NCBI GenBank assembly: GCA_047495785.1
Contig: JBLDXI010000054.1
Coordinates: 1,302,001 to 1,366,000 of the forward strand
Direction of reading: 5' to 3'
DNA length: 64,000 nt
Source: Lepidodermella squamata
Taxonomy: Eukaryota > Animalia > Gastrotricha
Position 1 is the stretch's first letter; every line of letters begins with the position of its first letter. Below are positions 23,265-61,110 of the stretch, piece by piece. The translations under genes and the position numbers were made by a program. A model generated the notes under the pieces. That model worked only from the letters and a program-made list of their open reading frames with translations, did no database searches and was not told where the DNA came from.

Positions 23265-25559
23265 TCACAAAAAGAATTGAGCCATTATAGAAGAATCCAT
23301 CACTGGAAATCGCTCGTTGGCCAACACTGGAGGCTTCTTTGTTAAGGCTTTCACAGCAGCTTTCATATCTTCAATGATTTCTTTGCGTAATTCAGCGTCA
23401 GCTAACAAAATCTGCCGAGCAAGCTTGTTCTGCTCAGCCAAGCCGGCGAGAACCAACCCAGCGCTGCTGGAAACCCATGCCAATGATTGGACAACTTCAA
23501 CTCTGCTTTTGTTCTTCGAATTAACCACGTACAACGCAGCGTTGTGCTGGAGATATATCATAAACTTGTGTAATTTTTCGCGGCTTTCATCGTCGGAAGT
23601 AGGCTCAAAATAGGCATCGAAAGGAACGATTACCGGTTTACGAAATGAGATCGCATGCAGGACAAGCTGAGAGTAACTCAAATCAAGAGAGCTGCCCTTT
23701 TTCTTAATAATCCAAGACAACGCCGCCTTGGCAATATTGAGCAATTTCGGAGCGAATTTGGTCTTCCAACGATTTCGGCATTCGGCATTAGCACAGCGAA
23801 GCAGATTTGCGATTAATAGCAAACTGACAGGTCCGCCTTGATTAGATGGAGGTAGAGAGAAAATCAAACCAACAAGAGGATCAAATTCGGGCGATGTAAT
23901 AATTTTAGTGAAACAAGACGAGTTTGAAACTGCGGCAAGAGTCGATACGAAATCAGTCACTTGTCTGACAGTTATGAAATTCTTGTATCGGCCCAACTCG
24001 CTTTCCATCAAGATTTCGAGGCCCGTTTTCAAGATGGGAATATAGTTTTTGCAAAAGCTCTCACTTCTGGCGAGAGGAGCAGCCATTTCAGGACCATTCC
24101 ACATTACGTAGTTAGTCATCGGGACCGCTAGAAAAGACAACAAAAGCATTTGGTCGCCGGAGACGCCCAACTTTTTGTAGTTTTCGATGAAAAACCCACA
24201 TCGAGTAGCCAAATAATTTAAAAAAGGCACATGGTGAATTAAATAATCGGGAGATGGAATCGAATCACGGAAAAAGATGAGAGTAAAAGCCTGAGAAATG
24301 TGCAAGGTGTGGAAAAGGTTCCCGGTAGTTACAACATTTCGAAGAGAACATTCTATGGGCGGAGTTTTGAACTCTGAGTATTTATGCTCCGCAAAAGAGA
24401 TCGTAGAGATGAGAGAAAGTAAATCCAAGGCTTCGAAAAATTCCCGTTTTGACATCTCTTTCAAAGAATTTTTTAAATTCGGGTTCTTCATGGCCTGTTC
24501 AGTCAACGCCTTGATTAAGGTGTTCGAAAGGAAGTTCTTGCCGTTGAAGAGAAACATTACGGCACCTCTACAATAAGTTAACAGATTGTCAAATGGCTGG
24601 AAGAGAGCCTGATTTTTCTCATCAGAGTACTTCGGGAAGTTGAAAATCGGATGTGAGAACAAAAACCAGCTTTGATACAAATCAGTAAAATACTCGCTGG
24701 GCAAGCTATCAGCCATTTTCACAGCAGCTTCCGGGCTGAATAGAGATTTTCCGAAATTCTTGAAAAAATCGACGTACCACTGACTTTTCAACAACTGCTT
24801 GTTTAATTTCGTGGTTTTGCCGTCAGAAAGCCTCAGCATTAGAGCAATCAATTTGAAAAACGAAGTTAGAAGCCACATGTCGAATTGTGCCAAAGTCGAA
24901 AATTCTGCTTTGGCTAGGTAAGCTAGCAGCGCTTCATTTTTGCCGATATTCGAGATAAATTCACTAAAACGCTGCATTCTATCCATTTGGACCACATTTT
25001 CAGTTCGCCGCTTTTCGATTACACGGTAGGCATGGCCTGCTAAGAAAAGGGCTGTCCTAACGTCGAAATTCGGCTCGAGGCTTTCCAAACGACTAAGGAC
25101 AGATTCCAATTTTTCTTCGGAATACATTTGCGAAATTACAGCCTCGCTCAGCTTGAAATCAGATACGAGACGCCGCTCCATTTTCAGCTTGCCAAACCGG
25201 ACCTCGGCGCAGTAGAATACGCCAATAGCTTCTTCCAATTTACCCATGATCCGGGTAGAATGGCAGTAGCCAACGTGAGACTCTTCTCCAGACCAGCAAA
25301 CGAGATCATTAGTTTTGATGGCTATACGCTCCAATTCTCTCGCGTTCAATTCAGTGAAAGCTTTCCTGTGTTTCTTCATAAACTTCTCCGCTTCACGGGC
25401 GCGCGTTTCAAAGATGAAATCACTTTGGCCTCTCGTTTGCGTTCGAACTTCTGTGATATACAGCGGGACATCCCGTGGTTCGTTGATGCGAGAGAGAACT
25501 TCGCAGATTTTCTCGGAGCCCGGCTCAACATTTTCACCGAAAAGGAACCGATGAAACAT
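23265..25559 (-). CDS. uncharacterised 764-aa helical protein, family copy A (intronless)
   Basis: Long intact ORF, same length as and closely similar to 33151-35445. Shares FG....PGS, LR.A...CR..W and HAI...P.+V.F motifs with three more copies. AATAAA downstream. Confidence 0.88.
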   Translation of the reverse strand: MFHRFLFGENVEPGSEKICEVLSRINEPRDVPLYITEVRTQTRGQSDFIFETRAREAEKFMKKHRKAFTELNARELERIAIKTNDLVCWSGEESHVGYCHSTRIMGKLEEAIGVFYCAEVRFGKLKMERRLVSDFKLSEAVISQMYSEEKLESVLSRLESLEPNFDVRTALFLAGHAYRVIEKRRTENVVQMDRMQRFSEFISNIGKNEALLAYLAKAEFSTLAQFDMWLLTSFFKLIALMLRLSDGKTTKLNKQLLKSQWYVDFFKNFGKSLFSPEAAVKMADSLPSEYFTDLYQSWFLFSHPIFNFPKYSDEKNQALFQPFDNLLTYCRGAVMFLFNGKNFLSNTLIKALTEQAMKNPNLKNSLKEMSKREFFEALDLLSLISTISFAEHKYSEFKTPPIECSLRNVVTTGNLFHTLHISQAFTLIFFRDSIPSPDYLIHHVPFLNYLATRCGFFIENYKKLGVSGDQMLLLSFLAVPMTNYVMWNGPEMAAPLARSESFCKNYIPILKTGLEILMESELGRYKNFITVRQVTDFVSTLAAVSNSSCFTKIITSPEFDPLVGLIFSLPPSNQGGPVSLLLIANLLRCANAECRNRWKTKFAPKLLNIAKAALSWIIKKKGSSLDLSYSQLVLHAISFRKPVIVPFDAYFEPTSDDESREKLHKFMIYLQHNAALYVVNSKNKSRVEVVQSLAWVSSSAGLVLAGLAEQNKLARQILLADAELRKEIIEDMKAAVKALTKKPPVLANERFPVMDSSIMAQFFL

Positions 25560-27983: not shown

Positions 27984-28054
27984 TAGCTTCTCGTCTAATG
28001 GTAGGACGCTGCCCTTAAACGGTGTAAATCTTGGTTCGACTCCAAAGACAAAGA
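27984..28054 (+). pseudogene. tRNA-like sequence (tRNA pseudogene or SINE head)
   Basis: A-box/D-arm CGTCTAATGGTAGGACG and B-box/T-arm TTGGTTCGACTCCAA are present. Anticodon stem pairs weakly and acceptor stem does not pair. Confidence 0.55.
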
Positions 28055-28888: not shown

Positions 28889-31460
28889 CTACATTTTCCG
28901 CTGGCATTGTTTCAAGCTTCCGCTAGACCACTGAGTTTCTATCAACTGCGGTTTCTTCATCTTAGGAAAGAAAAGCATGCCGAGATTCATTGTGATGCAG
29001 GCGAATATCATAAATGACAACGTGATGCGCTGATATGAACTTTCCTTGAAAATTGCCCCAGCAATGATGCCTCCGCAAGCGAGAAGCATCACTGTTCCGT
29101 AGAAGCAAGCTGATGCCGCTTTCAAATCGGTAATCTTTGGGATCGTTTTCTGCAAAAATAAATTTGAATGGATAGCTTTCGTACGAAATTAAAAATTACC
29201 GATCTGAGGGCATGCGCAAGGAAACTGCCTCTTAATGTGATGAGTGCGTTAATCAAACAAGCCACCGAGATGACAAACTGAGACATTCCCGAGGAACCGA
29301 CAGCCAAGCTGTAATTAACGAACTCTCTTTCTATCGAACTATCAACGGAAATTGCGTCAGTTGTTGAAATGACCTCCGGCGGCGATACCACGAAGCAAAT
29401 CAAAATGAATATTGCGAAAAATGTCAGTACAAGCGCCCCAACGCAGCAAATAGCAAATTTCAACCTTCCAAATCCAGCTACGCTTGCTGATTTTACCGAG
29501 GAAGTGTTAGTTAGCCGCAAAACTCGGAGGCTGCTCCTTGTCGGTAAGAGTAGGGCAGCCTTGTTCTGGGCAAAATATGCGAGTTCCAGCTTCCCTTCCA
29601 AACCAAACATTACACAGGTAATGCCGAAAAACAAAAGGCCATAGGCCAGAGTCATTAAATGCTGAAAATTCGCATCGAAGAGCATGGGTTGAAGCAGCAC
29701 GGAGGTTAGAAGTAAGATATTCCCGACCATGACGAACCGCCCAAACTCTGGAACGGATGTTGCGATTCTTTTATTCCTTTTCCGCATTTTTTCATGCCAG
29801 ATGAAAACGGAAACACAAGTTGCGAGTAATAACACCGCGAGTATCGTGATCGTTATGTAGGCGGGAAGACTGAGAAGTGGCGAGGTAGTTTTCTCTACGT
29901 GTACAGTATCAGAGGGAGGTTTCCCGTTCGATGTCCCCCAAGTCATGGGCGAGAGACTGCAATTCATATCTCGAAATTTCGAGAAGTAAAAGCATATCGG
30001 GATTTGTTTGATTCTGTTTGTAATTGGATCCCTTCTATACTGAAAAAGGCCTTGAACCGAACTACCGCCCGTGTTCAATGTTGTGTTCCTTTCGAAAGCG
30101 ACATCCCCGAGTTTCACTCTCAAGCGGGTCGAGAAGAGCGCTTCCTTCATAGTGTTAACTATAGAGCCGCCGTTTTGTTTGAACATATTACCACGAGTCA
30201 CCCATTGAGAAAGAGTTTGATTGTCTGGATGAAAACAAACCAATAATTTTCAGAGTTGAAATGAGTCAATACTTACCGCTATTGAGGAGGGTCTCAGTTC
30301 TGTTCAACACAAAGATTCCTGCCATGGTGGTGTCATAGCACGCATGTCTCCTAGCAGAAAAGATGGGTGAAGCCTCCGGCTTTTCTATTCTGGACGTTAT
30401 CCAGTTAGTTAGATCTGTCCCAGAATTCCCAAAGGAGTCCACATCATTGTCAATACCCAAATTCATCAGACTTGTGCAACCGAAAGCAATCACACTCTGT
30501 AGAACTTCCTCCAGCATGCTCTCAGTACACCAATCAAAGCGAGAAGGGTCATTAGGGGAGAAAACAAAGGTTAACAGCGAGAAAATGACCACATTTGGCC
30601 CGAAGAGCTTGTATCGATGTAGATAACAAGCCGCTCGAGTGGTTGACGCTGCGTTTAGAATAATGATTCTCGGATTCAGCTTTTTCAAGTCTGAAACTGC
30701 TTGTTCTATGTTTTCAGCATCAGCTAAAGAGCCGGCAATGTAGGGAATTTTAAAAACTCCCACGACTTTCGAGCCGTTTTTTCTCTCAAAATTGGCGGCG
30801 AATTCGGAATCAACCTGCCCGAAGTAGTCACTACCTTCAGACACTAACGCAACTCGTTGCCACTTCATCAATTCGAAGAATTTGTGGAGGATGTTGTAGC
30901 ACGAGCTAAGCGAGGTCTGAAGCACAAAAAAGTTGCGATATCGCGATCTTTGAACGAGAGGCTCGTTTTGTGATGCTGCCAACGTGATTCCGAGGTAATT
31001 GAAATGTTGAAGGATTTGCCCAGTGTTCATATTAGCCGAACTGAATGGACCAACTGTCAGTGGTAGTCGGTCTGAGATTGAATCATTGAAATGCAGCTGG
31101 GACACGATTTTACTCACTCCGATCGGCCTGGAATACTAACGAAAACAAATCAATGCAAAAATGTTGAATTACTCCTCCGCCTACCAAGTCATCAACGAAG
31201 TCCACAGCTAGTTCATAGCCAGGTAGCATGTTCATTCGTTTAACGCTATCAAGTGCGAGTCTGATCGCCTCGGTGCAAATGGGCCCCATAGGTTGAACAG
31301 TACCCCCATAGTTATATGACGCCATCATGCTGATGACTTTCCGGCTCGTATCGTTTGGGTTGTATGATGTTGAGAAAATTCTCGGCTCCAATGGGGCTGA
31401 CATAGGTATTTTCGCTAGCGCGAAGGCAGCGATTAACAAAGTGATAAATGCTCGAAACAT
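28889..31460 (-). CDS. GABA-B-like class C GPCR, copy 5 (subfamily B); exons 31460-31185, 31135-30277, 30224-29200, 29149-28889
   Basis: Same intron positions as copy 4 (49, 52, 50 nt). Signal peptide MFRAFITLLIAAFALA, VFT and 7TM; TM6 FYGTVMLLACGGIIAGAIF is identical to copy 4. Confidence 0.88.
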
Positions 31461-33150
31461 TGGATTAATTATTATGCTACGTTTTTTGTTAAACACGCTG
31501 CCTAAATAATGTCCACCGCTGCGAAATCGGCATAACATCCTGTTGAGCAATTTCCTGCCATTATCTTGAGTTTGATTGAATCTAATGCATTTTCTTCTAC
31601 CACACGACAACCGAATCTTTGACCCAAAAGCGTCATGTTTCACGCATGGCGTGCAATATGAGCTTACTTTTCAAAATCACGGATGTTCAATTCGACTATA
31701 TAGATTATTTGAGACCTCCACAGCAACAGTGATGAGAAGACGGGCAAGCTCGAGAATAATATATTCTCAATACCTTCTTGATGGAAACTAATGCGCCTTC
31801 ATCAACACTATTTCCTGCATTTCAGCGGCGATTGACGCATTTTCCAACCACGAAAAATGCCTCCATTCTTCGAAATTTGAGAATATGTACGGTGAAATAT
31901 CCTGCCATCAAGATGGGTATGATTTCCGATACTTTTAGCAACTGATATTGAACAATTCTACCAAAAGTGTCATTTTTCACACATGGCTTGCGCTAAGTAA
32001 ACCTGACATTCAAAACTCACGGATTTTCTTTCTGAACTATATTTGTGACATCAATAACAGCATGTGGACAAGGTCTTTAAGGAAGGAAATTGCCTGGATT
32101 AGATTCGCCCACTTGTTTTCACGGACCAATACCTCTCCCGACTCTATTTACTGCTTTTAAGCGGCGACACACCGATGCTCGTATATCCGAACGTGCTATG
32201 ATTCTTCTAAATTTGAGATGATAATAGTATCTGATGCGGAACCTAGAGCCCGAACGCTGGATCTACCGCGCGACACATCGAACACGACCAGCAGCTGGCT
32301 TGGTTCAGGCTAATGAAGGCAAGTCAACTATGGAGCCACTAACCATTAACCAGTTGAGCTATAGCATCATGGTTTCAGGAATGAAAAACTAGTAATTGCT
32401 TGCGGAAAAAATATGAAGAGTATGTGGCAACAAGAATGTGCCCAGGGGCCACCCGAATGTTAATCCGGCACCACCCTTAACCCCAAAAGGAAATTTTCGA
32501 AAAAATGAAAGCTGCTCCGACTAGGCCCAGCTCCAAAGGGGTGACAGATTTTTCCATTTTTTGAGCCAAAAATAACAAAATGTATCGGGGCCCTCACGTT
32601 TTCCCAAAAAGTGTCCGAATTTGCAAACGCCTACGTAGCGCGTAACTAAGTCAAAGACTGCCGCAGACGCATTTTTGCAATTTAGGACGTCATCCATCAT
32701 TTAACGCTTTCACCTTTGTCGTCCTAACCCACAACCCACTGCCCGCATATTTTTCTGAAGCAATAAATTATAGGTGAGTTGATACCGTAGATATAGGTGA
32801 TTCCTGTATCCAAATGAAACTTGCCAGACTAAGTGCGGCCATCTGAGATAACAGCGGGCAGCGAGTATCAGTTATAAATATGGTAACAGACGTAAAATGC
32901 CAACTTTTCAATTTAAAATCTAAACAAGAAAAAATCGTTGCCAACGATGCTTGAACAAAACCATGATTTGGGTTCATTCGAAATGAAGAAGCGAGCTGAT
33001 GATTACAAGAAGAATTGAACTATCCACTGAAACTTGAAACCAAGCGTTCCACATATACAATCACGGTTTCATAATCCTTAATTACAGCTTTCTGCAAGCC
33101 CATCCAAAACATGATTTTCACAATCTAACAAAGTCAATAAATTCTTCACA

Positions 33151-35445
33151 CTAAAAAAGGAGTTTGACAACTTCCGAAGGGTCAACGGGAGATGACATAT
33201 CACCTTTAAAAACCGGAACCATCTTAGTTAAACTGTTAAAGGTAGTTTTCAGATCGAATATGACTTCATCACGAAGCTCCGCGTCATCAAGCAAAACCCG
33301 GCGGGCTAATTTATTCTGCGCAGCCAGGGCACCCAGAAGAACCCCGGCAGTGCTGGAAATCACTTGAAATTCCACTATTCGCTCGTCAGAGCTCTTAGTC
33401 TCAACACCAGCTGGGTACAATGCAGCGTTGTGCTGTAGGTACAACAGAAATTTCTCCATTTTACTGCGATCTTGAGTCTCAGAGTTAGAGTCGAAATAGG
33501 CTGAGAAAGGTACGATAACAGGTTTCCGAAATGAAATCGCATGTAGAACCAGCTGGGAGTAGCCCAATTCAAGCAAACTGCCTTCTTTATTGATAATCCA
33601 TGAAAAAGTGGCCCTGGCAATATTCAATAACTTCGAGCCGAATTTCATTTCCCAGCGTTTTCGGCATTCAGCATTAGCGCAGCGCAGTAAATTCGCGGTA
33701 AGTAGTAAACTAACAGGCCCACCTTCATTAGACGGTGGGAAGGAGAAAAACAAACCAACAAGAGGATCGAATTCAGGTGATGTAATCATTTTCGAGAAGC
33801 AGGAGGAGTTCGAGACTGCAGCAAGTGTCATCACCAAATCAGTCACTTGCCTCACGATTGCGAAATTCATCACTCTACCGTAATCGCTTTCCATTAATAT
33901 TTCAAGTCCGGTTTTTAAGGTGGGGATGTAATTTATGCAGAAGCGCTCACTTTTGGCGAGAGGAGCAGCCATTTCAGGGCCATTCCACATGATGTAATTA
34001 GTCATTGGAACCGTTAGTAGAGACATCAATAGCACCTGGTCGCCAGAAACACTCAACTTTTTGTGATTATCAATGAAGAATCGGCATCGAGCTGCCAAGT
34101 AATTGAAAATTGGAAGATGGTGGATTAAATAATCGGGCGATGGAACAGAGTCACGAATAAATATGAGAATGTAACTCAGCGATGTATGCAAGGTGTGAAA
34201 AAGGTTTCCAGTCGTCACGAAATTGGTGTTAAGCCATTCTTTGGGTGGATTTTTAAATTCGGAATACTTGCACTCGGCGAAAGATATCGTAGAAATGAGA
34301 GCAAGCAAATCCAAAGCTTCGAAAAATTCACGTTTAGACATCTTTTTGACAGTATCCTTGAACACCTGGTTTTTCATAGCATTTTCAGTCAAAGCTTTAA
34401 TAAAGGTATTCGAAAGAAAATATCTGCCATTAAACAAAAACATCACAGAGCCTTTGCAATAAGCTAAAAAATTGTCAAACGGCTCAAACATCACAGGGTC
34501 TTTTTCGTCAATATATTTCGAATAGTTGAAAATCGGATGAGAAAATAAAAACCAGCCTTGGTACAAATCTGTGACGTATTCATTCGGCAGGCAGTCAGCC
34601 ATTCTTATAGCAGCCTCGGCGCTGTATAGAGATTTTCCGAATTTCTTGAAAAAATCGATGTACCACTGACTTTTCAACAACTGCTTGTTCAGCTTCGTGG
34701 TTTTGCCGTCGGATAACTTCAGCATTAGAGCGATCAGTTTAAAAAACGAAGCCAAAAACCACATTTCGAAAAACGTCAATTTAGGAAATTCAGCCTTAGC
34801 CAAATAAGCAAGAATTGCTTTATTTTTGCCAATATTCGAGATAAATTCACTGAAACGCTGCATTCTGTCCACAAGGACAGCATTTTCAGTTTGCCGCTTT
34901 TCGATAACACGGTAAGCATGGGCAGTCAGGAACAGACCTGCCTTGACGTCGAATTTAGCCTTCAGATGTTCAAATCGACTGAGCACATCCTCGAGACTGT
35001 CTTCGCTATACAATTCGAAAATGTCCTCCTTCGTTAGCGCGAAAGCAGGTTCAAAATAAGGCTCCATTTTCGCCTTACCAAATCGAGACTCGGCCGCGTA
35101 GTAAACGCCCATCCCTTCATCTTGTTTGCCCAGGTTCACCAGGGTTACGAGGTAGCCGATCATCGATTCTTCAGTGCACCAATAAATTAGATCATTTGCC
35201 TTCACAGCAACTGGCTCCATTACTTCAAGTTTACTTTCCATAAAAGGTTTTAGATGTTCCCGCATCATGGCCTGGGCTTCGAGGCCTCGTTTTTGGAAGA
35301 TGGTGTCATCTTGACCGCGAGCACGAGTTCGAACCTCGGAGATAAATTTCCGGACATCAGATGGCTCTTTGATGCGAGACAAAATATCACAGACTTCTTC
35401 CGACCCGGGTTGGACATTGTTGCCGAAAATGAACTGATGAATCAT
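33151..35445 (-). CDS. uncharacterised 764-aa helical protein, family copy B (intronless)
   Basis: Intact ORF, collinear paralog of 23265-25559 with long identical stretches. Confidence 0.88.
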   Translation of the reverse strand: MIHQFIFGNNVQPGSEEVCDILSRIKEPSDVRKFISEVRTRARGQDDTIFQKRGLEAQAMMREHLKPFMESKLEVMEPVAVKANDLIYWCTEESMIGYLVTLVNLGKQDEGMGVYYAAESRFGKAKMEPYFEPAFALTKEDIFELYSEDSLEDVLSRFEHLKAKFDVKAGLFLTAHAYRVIEKRQTENAVLVDRMQRFSEFISNIGKNKAILAYLAKAEFPKLTFFEMWFLASFFKLIALMLKLSDGKTTKLNKQLLKSQWYIDFFKKFGKSLYSAEAAIRMADCLPNEYVTDLYQGWFLFSHPIFNYSKYIDEKDPVMFEPFDNFLAYCKGSVMFLFNGRYFLSNTFIKALTENAMKNQVFKDTVKKMSKREFFEALDLLALISTISFAECKYSEFKNPPKEWLNTNFVTTGNLFHTLHTSLSYILIFIRDSVPSPDYLIHHLPIFNYLAARCRFFIDNHKKLSVSGDQVLLMSLLTVPMTNYIMWNGPEMAAPLAKSERFCINYIPTLKTGLEILMESDYGRVMNFAIVRQVTDLVMTLAAVSNSSCFSKMITSPEFDPLVGLFFSFPPSNEGGPVSLLLTANLLRCANAECRKRWEMKFGSKLLNIARATFSWIINKEGSLLELGYSQLVLHAISFRKPVIVPFSAYFDSNSETQDRSKMEKFLLYLQHNAALYPAGVETKSSDERIVEFQVISSTAGVLLGALAAQNKLARRVLLDDAELRDEVIFDLKTTFNSLTKMVPVFKGDMSSPVDPSEVVKLLF

Positions 35446-37824: not shown

Positions 37825-38114
37825 TACAGGGTGACTTTTTTATAGTGGCAATAATCTTTCTTAGCAATATTTGCGTGTAGTACTGCATTACGCTTGTATG
37901 GCGAGTACTTGCACAGCCCGATGTCGATATCCTGTAGAATCAGATTAGACATGTTTACATGTAAAAAAACTTGGCAGTGATTGAGCGCGTAATAATTAAC
38001 AGTGCCGCCGCGACCTAGGTCATGTTGAGCCCCAACGAACGAAACAATTTAACAGGTGCACGAATAATTGTCGTTAGTCACATCTGTCAGTGCAAAATTT
38101 TCTCTGAACAAAAA

Positions 38115-39226: not shown

Positions 39227-39364
39227 TTTCAAGGTGTGATTGTGTGAGGATGGTTTGAAAAGTTCAGAAATTTGAATAAAAAAATCGATTTTTTTCCAAT
39301 GTCGTCAATTTATTTCTTTCAGAATCGCGCAGTAGTTCACCTTCTCAACTCAACACCAGGTTTT

Positions 39365-46100: not shown

Positions 46101-46299
46101 AGCCATAAAACTTTATCGGTTGTTTTCCAGGAAACCCGAATTATGCTGGATTCGGATTCAAATCTTTAACTCAATACTGAAACGCTTTGGTCTATATGAG
46201 CAATGTTATGACAGAATGTCACCGTCACTTACCAAACGTTATTATATTGATCCATAAATTATTTGTGAATAATTATATCTGTCACTTTCATCAGATTTT

Positions 46300-47191: not shown

Positions 47192-50100
47192 TCATTTCTT
47201 ATCGGCTGGAAACATTTTCGACACGATTGAAATAATCAGCGAATTTCCGTACAGCGTTTCATGCATGCTCGTCGCAATGTGGTTGAAAGTCGAGCTTTCT
47301 CGTAAAGAGGCCAAATACTTGCGAAAACGTGGGCAGTTTTCCGCCAAGGTAGCCATCAGCAACCCGGCTGCGATCGGCACCAATTCTTCATAAATCGGAT
47401 CATCGCCATGTTCTTCGTTCGAATCGTCGAAATTCGAGTAGATCGCGACCAATTTCGCGATTTCAGCAGCGAGTCGAGCGAAGTGGTCATCAGCCACCCT
47501 AACCGCATCAAATTGAACTAGTTTCGGACATTTAGCGAAAATTGCATGGAATGCGACCAAATAGTTCACGGCAATTTTCGGCTCTAATTCAGATAAATCG
47601 AGTAACTTTTCAAAAACAATTGAACCAATTTTTTCGAGTTGAACCCCATGAATTTTCAACCAACGCTCTCGACATTTTTCATCAGCTGATCGGAGTGAAA
47701 TTGCAATAAATTCGATTTTCACGTAATTTGAGCCCAGATTGAATTGATCGAATGCAAAATCAATTAGAGATTCAGATTTGATTAAAGCTTTCGGTAAAAA
47801 AGACAGCGGCATGCAGGCTAAATTCGTCATGAAAGACCACAGAATTTTCATTGAGTCCAAGTCTCGTAGTAGAAGAGGTAAAGCGCCTGAAATCGTATTC
47901 ACAAATTGCTTGGCAAACGGCTTGCATCTTGACAATCGCAACAATTGGTGGAAAAATTCAACTTTTAAGGCGGTATTTTTCAAAATTGAAATGAGATTCT
48001 TCAGTGTCGCTTTGCTGTTGGCGTTCAGCTTCTCCCAGTTTTGAGCTAGAAATTCAGATCGGCTGGTCAGTTGAACGTAGTAAGATAGGTGATCGATTAA
48101 ATTCGGCTTCTTGTCAAAAAGTGAGATGAGCAACTTGTCGGTGGTTTCCAGAATTTTCTTCGCAGAATGCGGCTGCGTCTCGGGCCCGTTGGTTAGATAC
48201 TTCTCCTAAATAATAAGTATACATATTAATATTCAGAATCAATGAAATAAAAGTTCTAAATTAAGTGAAATTATTGTAATGTTACGTCAAATACCTCCAA
48301 AAATATTCCGAAAATTAGCCAGAGTACAAATTAAATGCCGTCATAAGCAGACTTTCGACTGCTCGACTGAAATGGCTCAAAATCAAACCGATTGCCATAA
48401 AACATTCCGCACCAGTAAATTATTTTCAAACAAATTTTATACAACAGTAAGCAACTAGCATTTTCGCTTATATTTAATCACGAGAGCAGGAAAAAGGCAA
48501 CTGATTCATCTGCAGCAGATGCCAGATTCATACCTGGGAGTCATGTTACAAAGTCGTCTTGTATCATCTTGATAATACAATCGATCAATAGTAGAAGATC
48601 TTCCCCGAAGCAATGAAGGCTTTTCGAATCTTATGCGGTTTTAACAGAGACACAATCGAATATGCCGAGCTGAAAGGAACCGTCTACGACTGTTTGCGAC
48701 AGGTCGGAACCGACGAGGCCAGCGGCAAACGCATTAAAACAAGGATCAACAGATACATCGCGGCCAAGGCTTTCAGTAGTAAGATCATCACAATCGACTT
48801 ATCAAATCATTATTTCAGGCACTGACCACTCGTTGGCACTCATGTCTAACCAATTCACGGCTACCTTAGCTTCCATCACGTTAATCAGTGTTTTTAGGAC
48901 TTCGCGAACCCGAAAGTCGTTGTTAATTATTTTCGTCATATTCCCCGACACTCAGGCGAAACGAAACGAGGGATGCTTGGATGGAAGAAAACCCTGAGGA
49001 TGCAAACGCGGCTTTCGAAAGAATGGTTGGAAAGAAACAAGGGAAAATATATCGTCGTCAAGACCGGCCTCTGGCGTTAACATTTTCACCGTCATTCATT
49101 CAAATTTTTAATTCATTCAGCCGGCGGCTTCAACCGGCGTGGAACAATTTTTCTCGCAGCTGAAACTTCTTCTGAATCCCAACAAGAGTAGAACAAAGGC
49201 GTTATTGGCCGACTCAATGATGAAGTTGCGCATGAACTGGATAGTTAGGATGATAATTGGTTGATTATCGGAGCTATGTCTTTTATTTACTATCGAAAAA
49301 TGGCAAAGTCGCCGGTCAAACTTGACGCGGTTACGTCCACGAATTTTAACCGCAGCATCTCTAGTTGAAAATCCGCTATTTCTTTTAAAATCGAAGGTAT
49401 ATGCAGCATACCGAAATTTGTTTAAGGCTTATGATTACGCCCTGTTTTGGAGCTTTTCACCAAATCATAATTGATGACGACGACTTTAGAATAGCATTTG
49501 AGCCAAATCAAAGTGTGCAAGACGCCACAGCTTGATCTTCTCTTATTGTGCCAAACGATGGGCGTCAAATACGACAAAGTGACAAAGTTCAGTCGGAATT
49601 TCGAGAATGGAAAAAGTCTTGAGCATCTGGGCACAGTGCAGCGTTGCCTGCCGAGAAAACTGATTTGATGGGGCTGATCAATTCTTTGCGGACTTTCCCC
49701 GTCGCCACCGCTGAGTGTGAAAGAGGATTCTCTCAAATAAATCTGATTCACCGCGATCAACGCAATCGCTTGATGAAAGTCCCCGTGGTTAGCTCACCTA
49801 ACCTAATCATCTTCATGTATTGATTTTTCTCTAGATCTACTGTTCATCTCAATTAACGGCCAGCCAACATCCAAATTTGATCCCATTCCGTATTGTCGAG
49901 CGGGCCCGAACAGTGCTCGCTCGGCGAATAGGTTCAATTGTTTAAAATTGGTGCTCAGAGGTCGATACAACCCGTGCTCGACGAGGGCTTAACGGAGACA
50001 TAACCAAATACCAAATAATAAATATATTTATTTAAATATATTTGCCAACCTCTGAATGCTCGCAATTTCAGTAATTACTCGAGAAAACCGGAAAAATCCG

Positions 50101-51510
50101 GAAAAAATTACTCATGGGTAATTATCCGCTTTTAAACCGTTACCCTGAAGAATTTTGTCTTTATTTGAGATTTTTATTTGAATTATTAATCAAACGGTGC
50201 GAATAGATTTCACGAAAAGTAGCAGATATATAAAAACGTGAAAATACCTTGAATTGATGTTCCTTCCATTCAGCACTTGAAATCGCATTCAAAAGCAGCA
50301 ACAAATCGATCAAACCCGGAAAATTCGGCTCGTTAGCCGAAACCGCGGCCAAATATTTTGGCAAAGCATTGGCAAATAGCATCGAGCAAATCGATAATGG
50401 GCTTGCTTCCTCGAATTTCAACCCAGAAAACAGGAAAAACATCGAAGCCTGACAGGCGGTTTCGAAATCAGGAATTATCCAAGAAATGTCCCGTTGCTTC
50501 AATAACGGCTCGGCAAAGCTGAGCCAGCCGGAGAAAACGTCGTCGAAAATCGATACCTCGCGACAAGCCACCTTAATCGCAGACTTCGCCATAAATAAAC
50601 TCGCGCCAAATCGTTCGACGAAGGACAAATACCAGTCTTCGTGCAGTAATTGGTATCGAATGTTATGATGCCCGGTGTTGGCCGGGTAAAACCAGTTTGA
50701 AAACCAGTCCCACCAGGAATTACCCGATTCGGTTAATTTCACCCAGGCTGAAATCAACTTCATAAACCAGGCCAAAAATCGAAGTTCGAAATGGTCGGAA
50801 GTCGCAAAACTCGCTCGATTGAATAACGAAAATAACCGCTTATTATTCCGAATTTTCGGGATAAAATCGCTCCTTTGCCGCAAAAATTTCGAGATTTGAC
50901 GCTGGTTGCCGAATTTTATATAGCAGCATAAATGGGTAACCGGGTAGAGAAGTTCGGACCAGCTTTTCACGCCGTCCATATTTAGGATTCGATCGAGATT
51001 TTCGTCGAAATCGCGCTGGTCGAATGTTCGAACGACGCCCTGGTTCAAATCGGGCCGATGCCAAGTTTTCGACCCGACCCCGTTCGAAAAACCGAGTAGT
51101 GAATACGCGAGTGAGAAATGCGTTTTTTCCTCATTTTTCGGGAAATTTTCGTAGCCGGTAAACGCCAAAGCCGCGGCTTCTTCGTATCGTTTCTGGCCGA
51201 TCAGGGTTTCAATTGTATTTTCGAGTAAATCTTGGCTAAAGCCTCCTCGAATATTGCTGGCTGAGATGTAGTCATCGAAGGCTTGTTTCACATTTTTCGA
51301 TAATTTAGCGGCCTGGGCTGAATTTTGGAACACTGAAATGCGTCGCTGGCGCTCTTCGCAGGCCGATTTGCCACCAGCGGCACAAAGTCGGATTTCTGAG
51401 CAGAATCTTTCAACATCTGAGCGGTCGGTTATTGAGCTTAGGATGGATTGGACTTCAATTGAACCCGGTTCAGCCTGATCACCAAAAATCAGCTGATGAA
51501 AAATTGTCAT
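47192..51510 (-). CDS. helical protein family copy C (758 aa); exons 51510-50248 and 48205-47192, with a 2042-nt intron
   Basis: Phase-0 splice AAG|GTATTT ... TTTAG|GAG gives 758 aa, matching family length, with the family motifs in order. Confidence 0.85.
48500..49900 (+). mobile_element. decayed hAT transposase inside the intron of copy C
   Basis: TAECERGFSQINLIHRDQRNRL (hAT dimerisation motif) at ~49706-49772 and VGTDEAS (GTDGAS-like) at ~48703. Multiple stops; termini not identified. Confidence 0.7.
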
Positions 51511-52029: not shown

Positions 52030-55000
52030 TTAATCGCAAACATTGAAAAAGTGGTTTTTAGCAAGTAAAACCCTCAGATCATCCTCTTCATCACTACCAA
52101 AGAAATTTTCGTCATTTTCATCGTCGTCGATCAGAGTCTCATCAATGTCGTCTTCATCATCGCCCTCTTCACACTGAGAATTATCAGGGTCGAAAATATC
52201 TTGTTGCTCCTCCATAGCGGCGATGATAGTTTCGAAAGAATCGCGATTTTCTCGCAGAGCTCGTTTCGCCATTGGCCCAATTTCCACATTTTCAAGCATC
52301 GACGCCACAATCATGCCAACAATTATTTGGAGATACATAAAATACGTCTCGAAAACGTCGTCTTCGCTATGAGTTAGAAATTTATTCTCCTCAATTTCTT
52401 CAAAAATTCGTAGATAAGACGCCAATTGGTCGATAAAATTCGAGATTTCATCAAAAATCACAGCTGATTCGTCGAAAATCGATTCGAATGAAGCGAGAGG
52501 AGGAGATCGGCCGAAAATCGAGTGGAAACTGAATAAGTAATTGACTAATATACGCAGATTTTCTTCGTCAAATCTCGACGAGTCGTTGATGATTTTATAC
52601 AGATTTTTCGCAAGATTCCCAATTTCAGCGCCGTAATTTTTCGCCCATTTTCGACGGCAAACCACGTCACCAGACCGAAAAATTGCTGTAACAAATCGCG
52701 TGTGGATCGCATTCGTGCTGTCAAAATGATCGGAATTCAGCGAAAATTCGAAAATAGGCCGGGCGATATCCGTTTTTAAAGCCCTAGCGAAGACATTTTT
52801 CGGGAAAACAGCGAGAAATGACAGCGTTTGGAACGTAGAAGAGACCACATTTTCATCGCAATTTTCAGGTAAAACTGATGAAATCGCGCTGATGAATCGT
52901 TTGGAGAAAGGCGCCGACATGCCGATGCGAATTCTCGAAAACATGCTCATCGTTTTTAAGGCGGCTGTTGACAGGAAAATCATGAGAAAGTTGAAATCGT
53001 TGCGGCCAGTCTCCGTTAAATTGCCGTAATTTTTCGCCAAAAATTCGGCGCGTTTCGATAAAATTTCGTAAAATTGCGGCTGAGATGCGAACATAGCCTC
53101 GAGATTATCAGTCTCCAAACGCGACGCCAATTCAATCAAAGGCTGCTGGCTCAACGCGAGAATCGTTCGAGAAGTATAGGGCGGAGTTTTCATAATTTTC
53201 TCCGCCTCATTTTCCAACATTAAATGCTTCCATTCAGAGAAACCAATCGTATTAAGTAGCAGGATTCCGTTCAAAATTTTCGGGAAATCCGCGAAATTTT
53301 CGAGATATTTCGATTTTTCAGATTTCAACAATAGACATAACGCAGTGAGGTAGGTTGATGGGAAATTGATGCAGTAACTCAAGCATTTAGCCTCTCGATT
53401 CGAACTATTTTCGCAATGAAGCAAATCGCCGTGAAAGATGAAAAGCAGCGCGAGTTGCGTTAAGGTGGATATATCGTCCATTTTTGTAGTCGAGTCTTCA
53501 TATTCTTCGCGATTTCTAGTGAGAAACGGAATCGCGAAACCGACGTAGTTTCTTAGCACGTCTGAGAACATTCCAGGTTCGGCGGCCGCCAATTTCGCCA
53601 GAGATTCTTTCGAGATGAGAGATAACCCGAATCGAACGATGAAATCGTGGTACCATTGCTCGTTGAGCAGGAGGCTTGTGGGGGTCTTCTCCCGGTCAAC
53701 AGGTTCTGATGGGGAAGTTGGGTAGATCCAGGACCATAAATAATCAACAGTTCGAGAAATCCAGCCTAAAAAATTTAGAAAAATTAAAAATTAAAAATCA
53801 ATCGATTCGAAAAAATCATTTGAACTTTTTTAAATTTATAGTCAAAAATGTTACGCCTTAAGAAATCGCTTTATTTTTTTGTTTGTAGGACTGGAAATAA
53901 GTCTCCCCCAAATCCCCCTTAACACCCTTCGTACGTTACGAATTTATTTCTTGGAGCATAAGCATAATTAATTTTTCTCCGAGTTCAGTGATCACAAGGA
54001 TCAACGTCGAGATAAACTGGAAAGCCCACAAACAAAACAGAACTGACTGAACTGACTACATTTTAGCTATCCAGCTATCTCTCTGTTGTAGCTGCTCTGA
54101 TTTTTCAGTCGCGTTGCAATGAATTGCTTTGGTAGCCGCAACCAAATCACTTAGAACAACAAATTATTTCACATATTTTTGCTTCCGCTTAGAAGCCATG
54201 GCTGAATAGCTTTACGAACAGAAGGTTTCGCTGTGACTTAGGAATATGTACGCTGATTTGTTTTCATGATTATTACTGGCTTTCACGTTTTGGCCGCGTG
54301 ATGTGGCCGAAGTCGTCGAGCTGAAGACGAGGCCATAACTTAGGATCTATTCGCGGGTCGCAGAAGCCGGCTCTGGCAGCTCAAGCCGCAGCCCTCAGCC
54401 GTCAGAGAGCTGGCCGGTTGCCGCATCCGGCACCTCTACTGACGTCAAGTATGTCCGGACGGACAGCTCGAGCAGCATGGACCGATAACAGAGCGATGAT
54501 TGAATGATTTGGCTAAAAAATTAAAAGTGATTCACAAAATTTTGCTATCGCCGCTTTCCGTCAGCGTGTTGACACTTGTTGTAACTTCGATTATTGGCAC
54601 ATTTTAAATGTCACAAAATATCACAAAACAGCCCGCTCAAACTATTACGCGTGCAGGGCTGTCCCTCTATTCGAAAAAGCTTCTTTGTACGTTCGATTAA
54701 TCTGTTCGATTAATTTGTGATTAATCGAATTATCGATCGAGATCAAGATCTGAATAACGATCGAGATCGAGATCATCGAGATCGGATGTATCCCGAACTG
54801 GATCTTGAGCGTTATTTCCAAGCATTCCTCAACGTAAGTATTGCAGTGTGTGATTGATTCTACCTTTCCACTAGGTAGACGAAGAAGAGGAAGAAATTAT
54901 GTTGAATGAATGAAATAAATGAAATATTGAATGGTGTTTCCAGCCTTTTGTCATTTTCTAACAGGTCCCTTCCAGTAACATGGAAGACAATCGGATAGTA

Positions 55001-57215
55001 CAAGCTCAAAAGCTCAGGCGCCCATCTTTCATCAAACTGGCTTTCCCGTCGAATTCACGCAGCTATTCTGAAACAGTGCATTGGCCTAGTACCGCCGCTA
55101 TTACAGTGGGGAACTGATTTACTTCTATTATCATGTGTTCAAATCAATTGCAGCCGCCCTAACCCGGCAATATATGCCAGGGCTTCAGAACCCCCAAGTA
55201 TCTTAGAATCTCAGTATCTCAGCCTTGGAGTTTAAACTCGACCGTCAAATGCGTAAGAAAAATGCTATCAAGATACAGACATAGCGCCCGCGGATGAAAC
55301 AGCAGTCTGGCTCAATTGTCTATAAGGCGATAAGAGCGACGCAGTAGGCATCAAAACCACCGGGCATGAAAAGGCAAAGATAACTGATTCGAGCGGTGAC
55401 GCCAAAACGCAAATCAAGCCATTAGTTTTAATTAATCGAGCGAGTTGAGCCGATCAAAGCTAGTAGGGATGTCGAAAACACGGTATTTTACGAATGAACG
55501 GAATTTCTAACGTTAATTGATTAAGTGGATGGAACTAGAAACGTAAAGACGAGATTATCATTTTTATTTATGCTACAACTGCTGATAGACTAGGTAATTT
55601 TGCCGGCTAGACAGTATCCCATTGATAGCCGATTTACTGAAATTCGTACCTCCATTCCTGAGACAAATTTGAGATTAATATCCTTAGAATACACATTCAC
55701 TGTAGCAATAAAAGCTTTTTCGTAATCTCAGTGATCTCCGGAGAGAAACTTGATAATTCGAATGGGTTTCAACCGTGACGTTACCACTCATTTTATAATA
55801 ATTAAGAATATAACAAAAAAATATTAAGACACATTCTAAAATCAGGAATTAAAAATGTGATAGCAATTTTTCCAAATTTGCAAATATTCGTAATATTCAA
55901 AAGACTAAATTACTTTTCGCAAACACATCAAATCTCATGGCCAGAAAAATTTTACATCAGTTAGTATGTCGCTTGTTAATAGAATAAAAAATTCCGGAGA
56001 AATTTGGTTCAACCGTTCAAATTAACGAAAATTACCGAACCAGTTATCATCAGGGAGTTTCCAGTTTTTTGGTAAATTTGTTATTCTTCCCTTAAATCGA
56101 GTATAAAAAAATTCTCTCAGCGGGTTTTATTTAATAGGCCTTAAGGCTTAGGTACGAGGAAGAGTTTTCGAAAACGGCTTCCTAGACCAATGATATCGGG
56201 AAAATCACATATCCGTGAAATCGAATCCTGAAATCGATATTGGCTCTGCTAAATGAACGATATTCAATAGCGTAAATTACACGTAATATGGAGAACTACC
56301 TAATGCTTATTAATAATAAAAAAATAGAGAATTAATAGGAAATTAGAAGTTGAAAAATCAGAAAAAAAATATAAAAAAATCTTGAAAATCGTATTCCTGG
56401 GAAGTTTGACAATGTGATTATAAAAAAGACTAAGTTTTTATACCAGTATAACGATGAAATTTAATAAACACTCACCCGTCGGTCCGGTAGAATTCTCATC
56501 AATTTGCTCGACAATAACCAGCCAATTCGCCAACAGCATCATGAACCACGACAAAAACCGCAACTCAGCCGGGTCAGCCGTCGCGAAATCGATACTGCTC
56601 AACATTTTCATCAACCGCTTGTTGTACTTCAATCGCGGAATAAAATCAGTCCTTGTCTTCAAATATTTAACAACCGCCCGCCGTTTTCGACCATTGCCCA
56701 CCATCAAATGAGCTATACTATGCGTGACATTGAACAGCGCCCTGTCCCAGGTGATTTTATTATCCATGTCTAAAATCGCTTCGAGGTTCTCGTTCAAATT
56801 TTCGTCATCGAATTTTCCGACCGTTCGAACAGAAAACGTCCGTTCCCAAACCAAATTGCCTAACCCGGTCGGGTACCCAAGGCAGGAATAGGCGTAGACC
56901 AGGGGCGAGTAGTCTCGCTCGCCCCGAGACGGGCCCTCGTGGAATCGACAGACAAACCCCAACGCGGCAGCTTCGAAGATTTTTTCCTGTTGCATGTAGG
57001 ATAAAGCTAATCCATACAAGCAGTCGTAGCCTGGCGCGCCGTAAACTCGGCTGGCTTTCACGAACGAGTCTGCAGCTTCTCGGTATCGCTTTGACCCGTT
57101 CGATCGATTACCTTCCTTGCAGTGGTTACTGTATTGATTTTTCAATTTTAGAGTCTTCGACTGCTCACCGGCTGCATCGGCGCGATTTTCGGTGACGAAT
57201 AACCGAAATAATTAG
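52030..57215 (-). CDS. helical protein family copy D with acidic C-tail; exons ~57215-56476 and 53765-52030 (2710-nt intron); 5' end disrupted or missing, possible pseudogene
   Basis: Phase-1 splice ACG G|GTGAGT ... TTTTTAG|GC TGG is in frame. TPR-like segment EGNRSNGSKRYREAADSFVKA. Stop codons lie where the family FG....PGS N-terminus should be. Confidence 0.7.
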
Positions 57216-58827
57216 TTATTTTCGATCCAGTTGAAGGATGTGCAATTTCAAATACGCTCTAGTTTCGAGAAAGGACCTAGCTCAAACAAAAAAGTGCCGA
57301 AATTATTTGTCAGACATCCTCTAACGGGAAAGAAAACAGCTCTTCAACTCTCAAGCATATTGACCAGGTTTAAAAAATTGAAAAAAATCAGTCCCCGTTC
57401 GATTAGGTGCCAATGTTCGGCTTGATTTTTCAAGTTTTCCATGAAAATTTACCGATAAAATCCACCGAAAAATGGCAAATTGTTCTTTTCTATAGCTTTA
57501 TCTGAAATTATTCATTCCAACTATTCACATACATATGTTGACTGTAATAAAGTGCTCCTTCGTATGATTCTCGACGAGAAGGAAGATAGGCACAAAATCA
57601 TATACTGATGCCTTATGGAGATTCGAAGAAAGCGGTGTTTCGGCGAATTTACGGTGTTGTAAGGAATTTTCACCCTTCCATTGTCTTCTGTTTTTATTAT
57701 CACAAACAAATTCGCCCCAGATGGAACGACCATAATCTGATGAACTTACGGAAATTTTGAGTACCAGATTTTCTAATAAAGCTGTTAAAAATTATGCCTT
57801 ATTACGGTCATCATTCTTGCAAAATGTTGATACAAATTAAAAAATTTCAAAATATACTCTAACCTCTATTGATTATTGATAACTAAAGCCCATTCGTTTC
57901 GGCTTTAAATTTTGGGTCATGGCGTCGGCCGACTGTTACCCTGCTAGCACGAGACTGTTACACCTCGTGCTTTACACTGGCGCATCTGATTCTTCCACTA
58001 TTCCACTCGGAACAAAGGTTGTAACAACAATGGTCGAGCAAACTCCAGTTGAAGATCGAGGTTGAAGATCCCGTTTGGGACATCCTTCTTTCTATCGGAA
58101 GGAGTGGTCAGAAAAATATTCAATTTTTTCTCGTAAATTACACATCAAAATTACTATATCTACAAATGTCCATGCCAGCCTGATAGCGGAATAAGGATAC
58201 GGTCCTCAACGGGTTAGGGCCTTGCTTCGCCACTGAGAAAAGTTTGAAAAAACCAACTCCTCTGACAATGAATACCTTTCAAACTTAGCCGAAATATCGA
58301 CTACTAAGACGTTGAAGTCGGGTTTATTCTGAAATAGGGTCCTAGGTTTTCGCTCTCTTTAGCTCAGCTTCAAGCACAATTTAAAAATCCGACTTGAATT
58401 TCAAATTATTTCAGAAAGATGAATTCACGAATAAAAATTATGAAAATTCTAATCGATTTCCTTTCAATGATTTTTTAAAAATTTGCGAAATTTACTCAAT
58501 CACATCTTAAACTCACCGAGATTTATTACCTTCGGTTGTCTTCTTCAATCTTTAAATAGCGTTCTTCCGTTACAGCATCTCCAGCGGATATCAACAGGAA
58601 AAAAATCTAAAAAAAACCGGATTGAAAAAAATTATTGCAACATAACAAAATGTTTATTCAAACTAATATTGCGAGAAAATTGAGCAACAACAAAATTAGC
58701 AAGCACTCGGCAGGCATGATTGATACAAGGCAAGGATTGATATCAAGTATAAGAGAATGTATGCAAGTTGATCTATTTACAAAAAATAGTTGATCAAAGC
58801 TGAATATGTTGAGATTTTTCGATGAAA

Positions 58828-61110
58828 TTAGCAGACGCGAATAGCTTCATTCGCCGAAATTTGACTGTCAAACTGCGATATGACCCATTTGATCGACCCA
58901 TTCTCGGCGGTCAGATTCTTCCGGAAAGCGAAATTGACTTTCGCAAAATTCGAAATCGTAATTCCAGTCACAGTTCGTAAAATCGGCAAATAATCTCGAT
59001 TTTCTGCGGGATTTTTCAAGACGAAACTCGGTTTAAGAATCGAATTCAGATCGTCAATGATTTTCGCAGCTGATTCGTCGCAATTTGAAGTAATCGACAG
59101 AAAAATATCGTGAAATTTCACGATTTGAGGCGACCGGCCGAACAGGGCGTTAAAAGCCATCATGCAATTTATTTGATCAGAGATCGGCAATGAAAAAAGC
59201 TTCCTCGAGGCGAAAAAATCGAGGAGAAATTTCCCGATCTGGAAGAACTCAGATTCGTAACATTTTGACCATTTTTTCCGGGTCGTTTCGTCAGCAGTTC
59301 GGAGAAATACAGCGAGAAATCGCGATGAAGTCACCCGTTTTTCTTTGCCGGAAATTTCCTTCGAAATTAATTTCAAAATTGTTTCATCACCGGATAAATA
59401 CGAAAAATTAGAGCTTCCAGCTACAACTGTGATCGAAGCAGCGAAATCGAGAGACTGTTTCAAATATTCAAAGGCGAAATCGTTGTTCTTCAAACAGCTA
59501 TCCAGCGAAAAAATTGTCGAAGAAAGACCTCGAATTAATCGTTTTGACAACTGCGAGTAAGTCGATACTCGTTTCAATTGAGCCAAATTCGAGACAGATG
59601 ATTGAATCAACGCGATAATTTGAAGAGTTGTCATGAACAATTTCACGCCTTTTTCATTCAAATCTCCGCTGATTTCAGTTAGAGCTTCCAATCGGTTCGA
59701 TAAGCAGAGAAATAGAGGCAAATCACCGAGAATAAAATCCACCTTATCGAGTTTCTTTAGTTCAAATATCAGGATTTTGAAGATTTCATCGATATCGGTT
59801 AGCAAATGAGTCATTTTCGCATTCGATTGAGTCGATTTCTTCAGAAGACTAGGCTTCGCAACATTGAAAGCAATTGAAGACAACAAGCTGAGCAAATCGA
59901 AGCAACGAAGTGTTGATTCTTTTGAAAAAATCAGGTTAGAACAGCGATTTTCCAGTGAAATTCGTAAAATCTCGATCAAATCCCCCGAAAAATTCAACTC
60001 ACTCATCTTCGATTTACAAAACAATTCGACAGTTGCGAAATTAACACAGGGTGAAACTTCGTTAAACGGCTTCAAAATTTGAGTCGAATTATGGGAATTC
60101 ACAATGGTATCGAAAATCGGTTCGCAAAATTCGAAAAAACCGCTCAAGAGATCTTCAGAGACACGAGGCTCCATTGAAGACAATTTCGCTAGAGCTTTTT
60201 TGCTGGTGATATTCGCCACAAATCGTCTGATAAACTCAGCGTACCAGCTTTCTTTCAACAACCATCGAGAAATCGGCCGATCCCACGCGAAAATTGATTT
60301 GAATTTTCGAATTGCCCAATCAATAGTTCCTGAATTTTCGCGTTTTTCTGAGGCAGCAATCCAAATACCGATGAGTTTCATCAACCACGCGATGAATAAC
60401 TGATCATTTGGTTCTGAGGTGAGGAAATTCAGATTTGAAAAAGTACTCATCAGTCGAGGGTTTTTTCCAATTCTTTCGACAAAATCCGACCGTTTTCGAA
60501 TGACTCGTAAAACAGTGGCGAAATCGCCGTATTTCAGGTGGCAAATCAAGTGAGTGACGTAAAATAATCGATTCTTGCCTTCAATCGACAGAACTTGATC
60601 GATCGAGTACTCGAAGTCTTCTTCGTTCATCTCTCGGGTCGCTTTTCCGTACTGTTTGTTACACCATCGAAATCCAGGGAAACCCTCCGTGTAACCATAC
60701 GCCGAATACGCGTTGAAGAACAGTGATTTGTTAACCGGAGATTTGCCGTACTTCTCGCATAGTATGCAAGCCATCGCAGCCGCTTCTTTCAGGTGCTTTG
60801 AAGCTAAATGGACAGAAATCGTAGCTTGAAGGAGTTGTTCGGTGAAACCACCAAGAACGTGAAACGCTTGGTTGAAGCAGCTCATGGCTTCTTTGTAAGA
60901 ATAATTTTTCGAAAATTCGTGGCCTTGTTGCAACAAATCATCGTATTTTTGGCGGCGCTCGTCGACAAGTAAACGGCCTCCAGCGGCGAGAAATCTCACG
61001 TCTTTCAAGAAGCGTTCCAAGCTATCACTGCTGGTCAGATGAATAACCATGTCGCAAACTTCACGAGAGCCGGGGCTAGTATCATCGCCGAAAATCAATT
61101 CAAAAGCCAT
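58828..61110 (-). CDS. helical protein family copy E (760 aa, intronless)
   Basis: Intact ORF beginning MAFELIFGDDTSPGS; TPR-like LLQQGHEFSKNYSYKEAMSCFNQAF; shares family motifs. Confidence 0.88.
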   Translation of the reverse strand: MAFELIFGDDTSPGSREVCDMVIHLTSSDSLERFLKDVRFLAAGGRLLVDERRQKYDDLLQQGHEFSKNYSYKEAMSCFNQAFHVLGGFTEQLLQATISVHLASKHLKEAAAMACILCEKYGKSPVNKSLFFNAYSAYGYTEGFPGFRWCNKQYGKATREMNEEDFEYSIDQVLSIEGKNRLFYVTHLICHLKYGDFATVLRVIRKRSDFVERIGKNPRLMSTFSNLNFLTSEPNDQLFIAWLMKLIGIWIAASEKRENSGTIDWAIRKFKSIFAWDRPISRWLLKESWYAEFIRRFVANITSKKALAKLSSMEPRVSEDLLSGFFEFCEPIFDTIVNSHNSTQILKPFNEVSPCVNFATVELFCKSKMSELNFSGDLIEILRISLENRCSNLIFSKESTLRCFDLLSLLSSIAFNVAKPSLLKKSTQSNAKMTHLLTDIDEIFKILIFELKKLDKVDFILGDLPLFLCLSNRLEALTEISGDLNEKGVKLFMTTLQIIALIQSSVSNLAQLKRVSTYSQLSKRLIRGLSSTIFSLDSCLKNNDFAFEYLKQSLDFAASITVVAGSSNFSYLSGDETILKLISKEISGKEKRVTSSRFLAVFLRTADETTRKKWSKCYESEFFQIGKFLLDFFASRKLFSLPISDQINCMMAFNALFGRSPQIVKFHDIFLSITSNCDESAAKIIDDLNSILKPSFVLKNPAENRDYLPILRTVTGITISNFAKVNFAFRKNLTAENGSIKWVISQFDSQISANEAIRVC

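Follow-up and report, generated by a model that had tools for sequence, protein, structure and literature searches.

A tandem family of TPR-armadillo-like proteins in Lepidodermella squamata that is large, old and conserved, and probably of TTC12-like descent

Given the run of related, weakly similar genes on the minus strand at 23–61 kb of a 64,000-nucleotide stretch of the genome of the gastrotrich Lepidodermella squamata (assembly GCA_047495785.1, contig JBLDXI010000054.1, positions 1,302,001 to 1,366,000; the whole stretch is hereafter the window), we questioned what kind of protein these genes encode, and whether the low similarity among them reflects speed of change or age. A reading made from the letters alone (the sequence-only reading) had reported five same-strand paralogs with tetratricopeptide repeats (TPR) followed by armadillo (ARM) repeats, and preferred to see in them rapidly diverging intracellular immune proteins. 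The family proved to be large, old, conserved and lineage-restricted, and the account that we favour, with moderate confidence, is that of an ancient, large and lineage-restricted set of soluble protein-binding adaptors or scaffolds, of probable TTC12-like descent, which would work independently of the clamp that binds chaperone tails.

ORF (open reading frame) calling and blastp recovered five related genes in this interval, in a window of even G+C content (39–46%). A profile (A1) was made from an alignment of 11 full-length members taken across the whole genome, and its matches in the window were exactly seven pieces, one each for copies A, B and E and two each for copies C and D (E-values of 1e-24 to 1e-267). 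The features are as follows, with lengths in amino acids (aa) and with N-cap denoting the conserved N-terminal segment of the family:

23265–25559, minus strand: copy A, 764 aa, single exon, intact, with N-cap, TPR and ARM body (ORF; profile positions 1–746, E-value 3e-264)
33151–35445, minus strand: copy B, 764 aa, single exon, intact (ORF; profile positions 1–746, E-value 5e-267)
47192–48205, minus strand: copy C, putative exon 2, 337 codons and stop, C-terminal ARM repeats (profile positions 432–727, E-value 2e-26; acceptor at 48206/48205)
48206–50247, minus strand: copy C, putative intron of 2,042 nt, mostly unique sequence (consensus GT...AG and polypyrimidine tract)
50248–51510, minus strand: copy C, putative exon 1, with 421 codons for the N-cap, the TPR and the initial ARM repeats (matched by the profile from its position 2, with real similarity stopping at an AEWK motif; donor AAG/GTATTT at 50247)
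52030–53817, minus strand: copy D, C-terminal piece, interrupted close to its beginning by an in-frame stop (profile match, positions 216–740; acidic tail with 84 D+E against 47 K+R)
56438–57208, minus strand: copy D, N-terminal piece or relic, with neither an ATG start nor the FG....PGS N-cap (profile match, positions 32–251)
58828–61110, minus strand: copy E, 760 aa, single exon, intact, the protein used for modelling (ORF; profile E-value 5e-237)

Pairwise identity by blastp was 66% between copies A and B, 33% between C and E (E-value 2e-53), and 21–24% between A or B and C, D or E (1e-21 to 1e-27), values that put the predicted paralogy of the five copies far above chance level. Nine residues were invariant in all 11 full-length members (G8, P13, G14, S15, R39, W289, F364, D405 and L409 in the numbering of copy E), and R604 and R611 were nearly so. 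The five same-strand paralogs and the shared motifs listed by the sequence-only reading are therefore real, on the strength of blastp, the A1 profile and these invariant positions. The profile search of the whole genome that it had proposed (121 Mb, 151 contigs) was run with A1 and gave 61 matches, representing at least 45 genes, mostly open frames of 650–780 aa; a few of the copies outside the window contain stops. The matches form arrays on C45 (865–925 kb), C59 (0–52 kb), C7 (2.89–3.18 Mb), C21, C2 and elsewhere. Those of C45 and C59 (loci L005–L030) hold identical genes in identical order, with partners that are 95–98% identical in protein (dS 0.07–0.155, dN/dS 0.09–0.19), and are either very divergent haplotigs or else a recent segmental duplication. 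Literature searches for such a family returned no description of one.

The ratio of nonsynonymous to synonymous substitution rates (dN/dS) was 0.17 gene-wide for A and B (dS 1.39) and 0.07–0.20 for six other pairs, and every pair tested is under purifying selection. Along the A/B comparison, 60-codon windows gave 0.06–0.14 in the ARM body and 0.2–0.58 in the TPR region and in the tail at the C-terminus; 0.58 was the highest finite estimate, and two windows with saturated dS gave none. By region, dN/dS in A/B was 0.23 for the N-cap, 0.31 for the TPR, 0.10 for the ARM core and 0.31 for the tail, and the corresponding values for L021/L029 were 0.20, 0.42, 0.17 and 0.20. In a quick maximum-likelihood tree, which was star-like and deep, terminal branches measured about one change per site. 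Copies A and B make up a single old lineage, the grouping of C, D and E with copies from C59 and C7 is loose, and an environmental relative from outside this genome (P0001, below) nests within the family. Given the low dN/dS, the deep star-like tree and the nested position of P0001, the low identity among paralogs reflects age and not speed. The description of the family as rapidly diverging is thus not supported, with dS at about 1.4 for A/B.

What the proteins look like was addressed with AlphaFold2, using the A1 alignment to model copy E (predicted local distance difference test, pLDDT, 79.5; predicted template modelling score 0.81). The model is all-helical, and together the models (pLDDT 80–85) place the conserved 45-residue N-cap ahead of a three-TPR domain and an ARM solenoid of about 600 residues. 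In VIA-align comparisons, residues 45–158 matched HOP TPR1 (Z 10.8, root-mean-square deviation 2.0 over 100 aa), PP5 (10.2) and Sgt2 (9.6), and residues 160–757 matched p115 (13.7), CTNNBL1 (12.9), APC-ARM (12.8), HspBP1 (12.3) and beta-catenin (11.6). A separate model of residues 1–170 (pLDDT 85) had structural matches at 47–160 only, led by Sgt2 (Z 12.2) and PP5 (12.0); HOP TPR1 scored 10.8–11.5 over both models, and RPAP3, Tah1 and CHIP were also among the neighbours. Because this list is flat, falling only from 12.2 to 10.3 by rank 50 across unrelated TPR proteins, it indicates no specific affinity to the carboxylate-clamp subclass. No structural match was obtained for residues 1–45, the N-cap, which are modelled as three short helices and are the most conserved segment of the family (M.F.LIFG....PGS..V......L..R.DV..F....R..AAGG).

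Pfam, PADLOC and PHROGs scans of the family proteins gave nothing above threshold; Pfam Arm (PF00514) had no match, although the fold is ARM-like, no conserved asparagine ladder was evident in the alignment of 11 full-length members, and a sequence-profile search against the PDB gave marginal PPR and TPR matches only. Neither signal peptide nor membrane helix nor hydrophobic N-terminus was found (the maximum Kyte-Doolittle mean over 19 residues was at most 1.65), and no catalytic domain was found either, in agreement with the sequence-only reading. Its proposed layout, an N-terminal TPR followed by ARM repeats as in UNC-45 and TTC12, is likewise supported by the structure models and by neighbours in the ESM-Atlas. 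In the Foldseek comparison that it had suggested, the whole model of copy E matched generic solenoids only (such as RanBP5, CAND1 and UNC-45), at TM-scores below 0.25.

Relatives outside this genome were also sought. A word-index protein search with copy E gave no match; a search of 1.84 billion representative proteins with the A1 profile gave seven, of which three were generic TPR proteins and four true relatives, all unnamed environmental sequences from ENA or Logan:

P0001: 766 aa, relative, E-value 6e-82
P0002 and P0004: N-terminal fragments with N-cap, relatives
P0003: N-terminal half of the 751-aa P0008, relative

With any copy here P0001 shares only about 25% identity, which places it in a different species. 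P0008 is informative about descent. Its alignment to A1 by hhalign had 98.3% probability (E-value 1.4e-14) over 365 columns, from the N-cap through the TPR into the first ARM repeats, and its TPR is canonical, matching Hop (3e-10) and RPAP3 (1.6e-9) as well as Tah1, PP5, SGT and CHIP. The six best ESM-Atlas neighbours of P0008 were all TTC12 clusters (0.94–0.96), the best sharing 215 of 256 features; a word-index search with P0008 gave no match even at E-values up to 10. This genome has a two-exon ortholog of P0008, 63–66% identical, at C7:1990573-1992830 and C32:356735-358992, which lies inside a further array of 700–760-aa paralogs. Sister-subfamily arrays of this type, with canonical TPR, were seen at C7:1986558-2078468, C32:275708-363096, C28:1770166-1835870 and C33:184310-260422, so that the superfamily is larger than the A1-type count; the C7/C32 and C28/C33 pairs look like duplicated or allelic blocks.

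The canonical TPR of P0008 offers a point of comparison for the docking of chaperone tails. Scheufler and co-workers reportedly described, in 2000, the two-carboxylate clamp of HOP TPR1 as residues K8, N12, N43, K73 and R77. These five columns were mapped onto the family through the P0008-Hop alignment and hmmalign, and read R-N-N-K-L in P0008, M-R-G-R-D in copy A, M-L-G-P-A in B, L-H-A-K-L in E and Q-Q-N-T-H in C; across 27 members they look unconstrained and nearly random. By this mapping, the predicted EEVD-binding clamp is lost in window copies A, B, C and E, and the predicted TPR shape of co-chaperones is kept.

In human TTC12, of 705 aa, ARM repeats follow a TPR at the N-terminus (PMC10267457); the protein is soluble and cytoplasmic (PMC8836003) and is needed for the assembly of axonemal dynein arms (PMC10267457, PMC8836003). 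The family here resembles it in size, in layout (as seen in the models of copy E and of its residues 1–170) and in being, by prediction, soluble and cytoplasmic, as well as through the TTC12-like neighbourhood of P0008. It differs in that TTC12 is normally a single-copy gene and this genome has dozens of copies, in that the window copies are marked by the FG....PGS N-cap and by loss of the clamp residues, and in the absence of any sequence-level match by HMMER. On balance, the family probably descends from a TTC12-like TPR-ARM assembly co-chaperone, which softens the earlier statement that it cannot be assigned to any known family, since a homologous relative, P0008, looks TTC12-like to a language model. 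Following expansion of such an ancestor, its members would have turned into adaptors. The conserved parts, N-cap and ARM core, would maintain a shared fold or partner, and the TPR head (less constrained than the ARM core in two of three pairs) and, in A and B, the C-terminal tail may give each paralog its own ligand, and the adaptors would act without classical docking onto Hsp70/Hsp90 tails.

Several observations weigh against this account. The link to TTC12 is the language-model similarity of one relative, P0008, at a recognition score of 2096, below the tool's comfort level; in the ESM-Atlas, copy E itself came closest to clusters of UNC-45 and of plant TPR-ARM proteins, at just 0.89–0.90, and the A1 search of 1.84 billion proteins reached no TTC12. 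The fold matches, at Z 10–14, fall in the range that helical repeats reach through common arrangement alone, the last two clamp columns (in TPR3) rest on a weaker alignment, and the faster change of the TPR relative to the ARM core was seen in only two of three paralog pairs, the third being without it. If TTC12 descent is true, this would be a rare case in which, within a single animal lineage, an assembly co-chaperone gave rise explosively to dozens of paralogs that are conserved and carry a new invariant N-terminal motif, with the chaperone-docking clamp lost, and hence a natural experiment on the re-targeting of TPR-ARM adaptors. In a stronger and distinctly tentative version, which we rate as rather unlikely, TTC12 would have radiated in this lineage into perhaps 100 or more N-cap-TPR-ARM adaptors that abandoned docking to Hsp70/Hsp90 tails and acquired the invariant N-terminal motif for docking instead. 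The outcome would be a client-adaptor system, diversified and private to the lineage, that might serve the building of many types of cilium or dynein, for instance, or another assembly line.

Could the proteins instead still be classical Hsp70/Hsp90 co-chaperones of the UNC-45, TTC12 or Hop kind, with a TPR head that binds the EEVD tail of the chaperone and an ARM body whose client differs from copy to copy? The TPR and ARM layout speaks for this, as do the best structural neighbours of the TPR (Sgt2, PP5, HOP, RPAP3, Tah1 and CHIP), the retention by P0008 of four of the five clamp positions, and UNC-45 and TTC12 as Atlas neighbours. However, the K, N, N, K and R columns are conserved in no window copy and vary nearly at random among the 27 members, no member matches UNC45-central or any TPR model of Pfam above threshold, and the TPR is the less constrained part relative to the ARM core in two of three pairs. 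The same pattern emerges from comparison with single systems. Hop/Sti1, SGT/Sgt2, PP5, CHIP and RPAP3 share the three-TPR fold, and P0008 matches them by sequence too, but their K-N-N-K-R clamp is replaced in A, B, C and E and the list of fold matches is flat. UNC-45 and other UCS proteins also set a TPR head on an ARM superhelix, and UNC-45 appears both among the Foldseek matches (6qdl, rank 5) and among the Atlas neighbours; they differ in length (about 930 aa against 760 aa) and in the lost clamp, the TM-score to 6qdl is just 0.12, and UNC45-central (PF11701) had no match in the 11 members at E-values up to 5. Because the EEVD clamp residues are absent, the classical co-chaperone role is weakened, and we judge it unlikely; of the earlier co-chaperone suggestion, the TPR-ARM layout stands.

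The invariant N-cap raises a further alternative, that the proteins are substrate-recognition or scaffold subunits of a ubiquitin ligase or a similar multi-subunit machine, with the N-cap as docking peptide. This would fit with the N-cap being the most conserved part and with the frequent use of ARM and TPR proteins as such adaptors, but the window has no ligase-type neighbour, the copies being interspersed with class-C-receptor-like genes and transposons; we regard the idea as improbable. Known ARM scaffolds (beta-catenin, APC, the p115/Uso1 head, CTNNBL1, HspBP1 and KAP3) share a right-handed ARM solenoid with residues 160–757 (Z 11.6–13.7), but they differ in that the family has no Pfam Arm match and no evident asparagine ladder, and the Z-scores lie within the range of unrelated helical repeats.

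Another view, the one to which the sequence-only reading leaned, takes the proteins for intracellular sensors or effectors of immunity; in it they would be caught in an arms race in which copies expand and die fast. Tandem arrays, very low identity among paralogs, one broken copy in the window and a few stop-bearing copies elsewhere in the genome are in line with it, and the weaker fold matches include the ARM domain of SARM1 (Z 9.5). However, dN/dS stays at 0.06–0.58 in all finite 60-codon windows and at 0.07–0.20 gene-wide, with no positive selection; the divergence is old, as seen from dS (near 1.4, or saturated) and from the nesting of the external P0001 in the tree; and both the N-cap and the ARM core are conserved. 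In the Pfam and PADLOC scans, domains of the NACHT/NB-ARC, TIR, death or nuclease type were all absent, as was any PADLOC match, and the model of copy E consists wholly of helical repeats. The immune interpretation is therefore quite improbable, and of the proposed birth-and-death only one broken copy here (D) speaks in favour, nothing more. As matters stand, this is a real orphan family that is functionally blank, and the dramatic arms-race reading is unsupported.

Copies C and D differ from the intact genes. Copy C consists of two ORFs, at 50161–51510 (N-terminal part) and 47192–48133 (C-terminal part), and is best read as a two-exon gene with a putative intron. With the donor AAG/GTATTT (intron from 50247) and the acceptor TTATTATTTAG/G (exon 2 from 48205), the predicted exons join in frame to give 758 aa; the length of this joined product was computed, and the profile searches were made on the exons separately. 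The junction would sit between profile positions of about 412 and 432, where 16–17 residues are left for 19 profile columns, which is the place expected from the family profile, and the spliced length fits that of the family. The earlier count of four copies at 758–764 aa (A 764, B 764, E 760, C 758) holds only if C is spliced. Copy D also consists of two ORFs (56438–57145 and 52030–53592), but its pieces overlap in profile coordinates (32–251 against 216–740), and a dedicated hidden Markov model found no N-cap exon upstream in 57100–58830. It is, as far as can be read from its sequence, a damaged and decaying copy, corresponding to what had been called a relic. The gaps in C and D were also considered as transposon insertions, a possibility that was rejected, as the DNA is mostly unique and only small repeat fragments match elsewhere in the genome. 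Within the gap of D lies a repeat of about 170 bp (55963–56136) with hundreds of genome copies that are 73–82% identical (518 candidates at first look), and it looks like a miniature inverted-repeat transposable element (MITE) or a short interspersed nuclear element (SINE). That the ORFs are non-functional, either pseudogenes or passengers of transposons or viruses, deserves next to no credence: copy D is broken and transposons lie nearby at 37.8–44 kb, but A, B and E keep intact ORFs of about 760 aa and C has splice sites that fit the consensus, dN/dS lies well under 1, similarity to PHROGs or transposases is absent, and the copies are just 20–35% identical, unlike young mobile elements.

Upstream of the start codon, 15 of 19 non-redundant family genes (loci L003–L029, and 61111–61123 of the window for copy E) have a T-rich tract that ends in (T/C)AG 0–25 nt before the ATG, as in ...GAAATAG/ATG of copy E. 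The tract looks like a splice acceptor, which might serve an intron in the 5' untranslated region or spliced-leader trans-splicing; the nematode SL1 leader sequence was absent from the genome, and the only 8-mers shared upstream were T-rich words at the level of shuffled sequence.

Other genes of the window belong to different families. A second tandem family has an ANF_receptor ligand-binding domain (Pfam E-values of 4e-8 to 7e-6) and comprises 1573–3687 (plus strand), 8737–10485 (plus strand), 11632–13907 (minus strand) and 29122–31643 (minus strand), the last of which sits between copies A and B. Since the ANF_receptor domain is followed by several hydrophobic helices in 29122–30243, these genes look like class C receptors. 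A Tc1/mariner transposase ORF (DDE_3, E-value 4e-6) lies at 38519–39226, within the region 37827–40113 / 41236–43638, and beside it are three ORFs of 140–180 aa that match nothing in Pfam and may represent a degraded retroelement. Finally, a 344-aa ORF at 19368–20402 on the minus strand encodes ankyrin repeats (Ank_2, E-value 1e-59).

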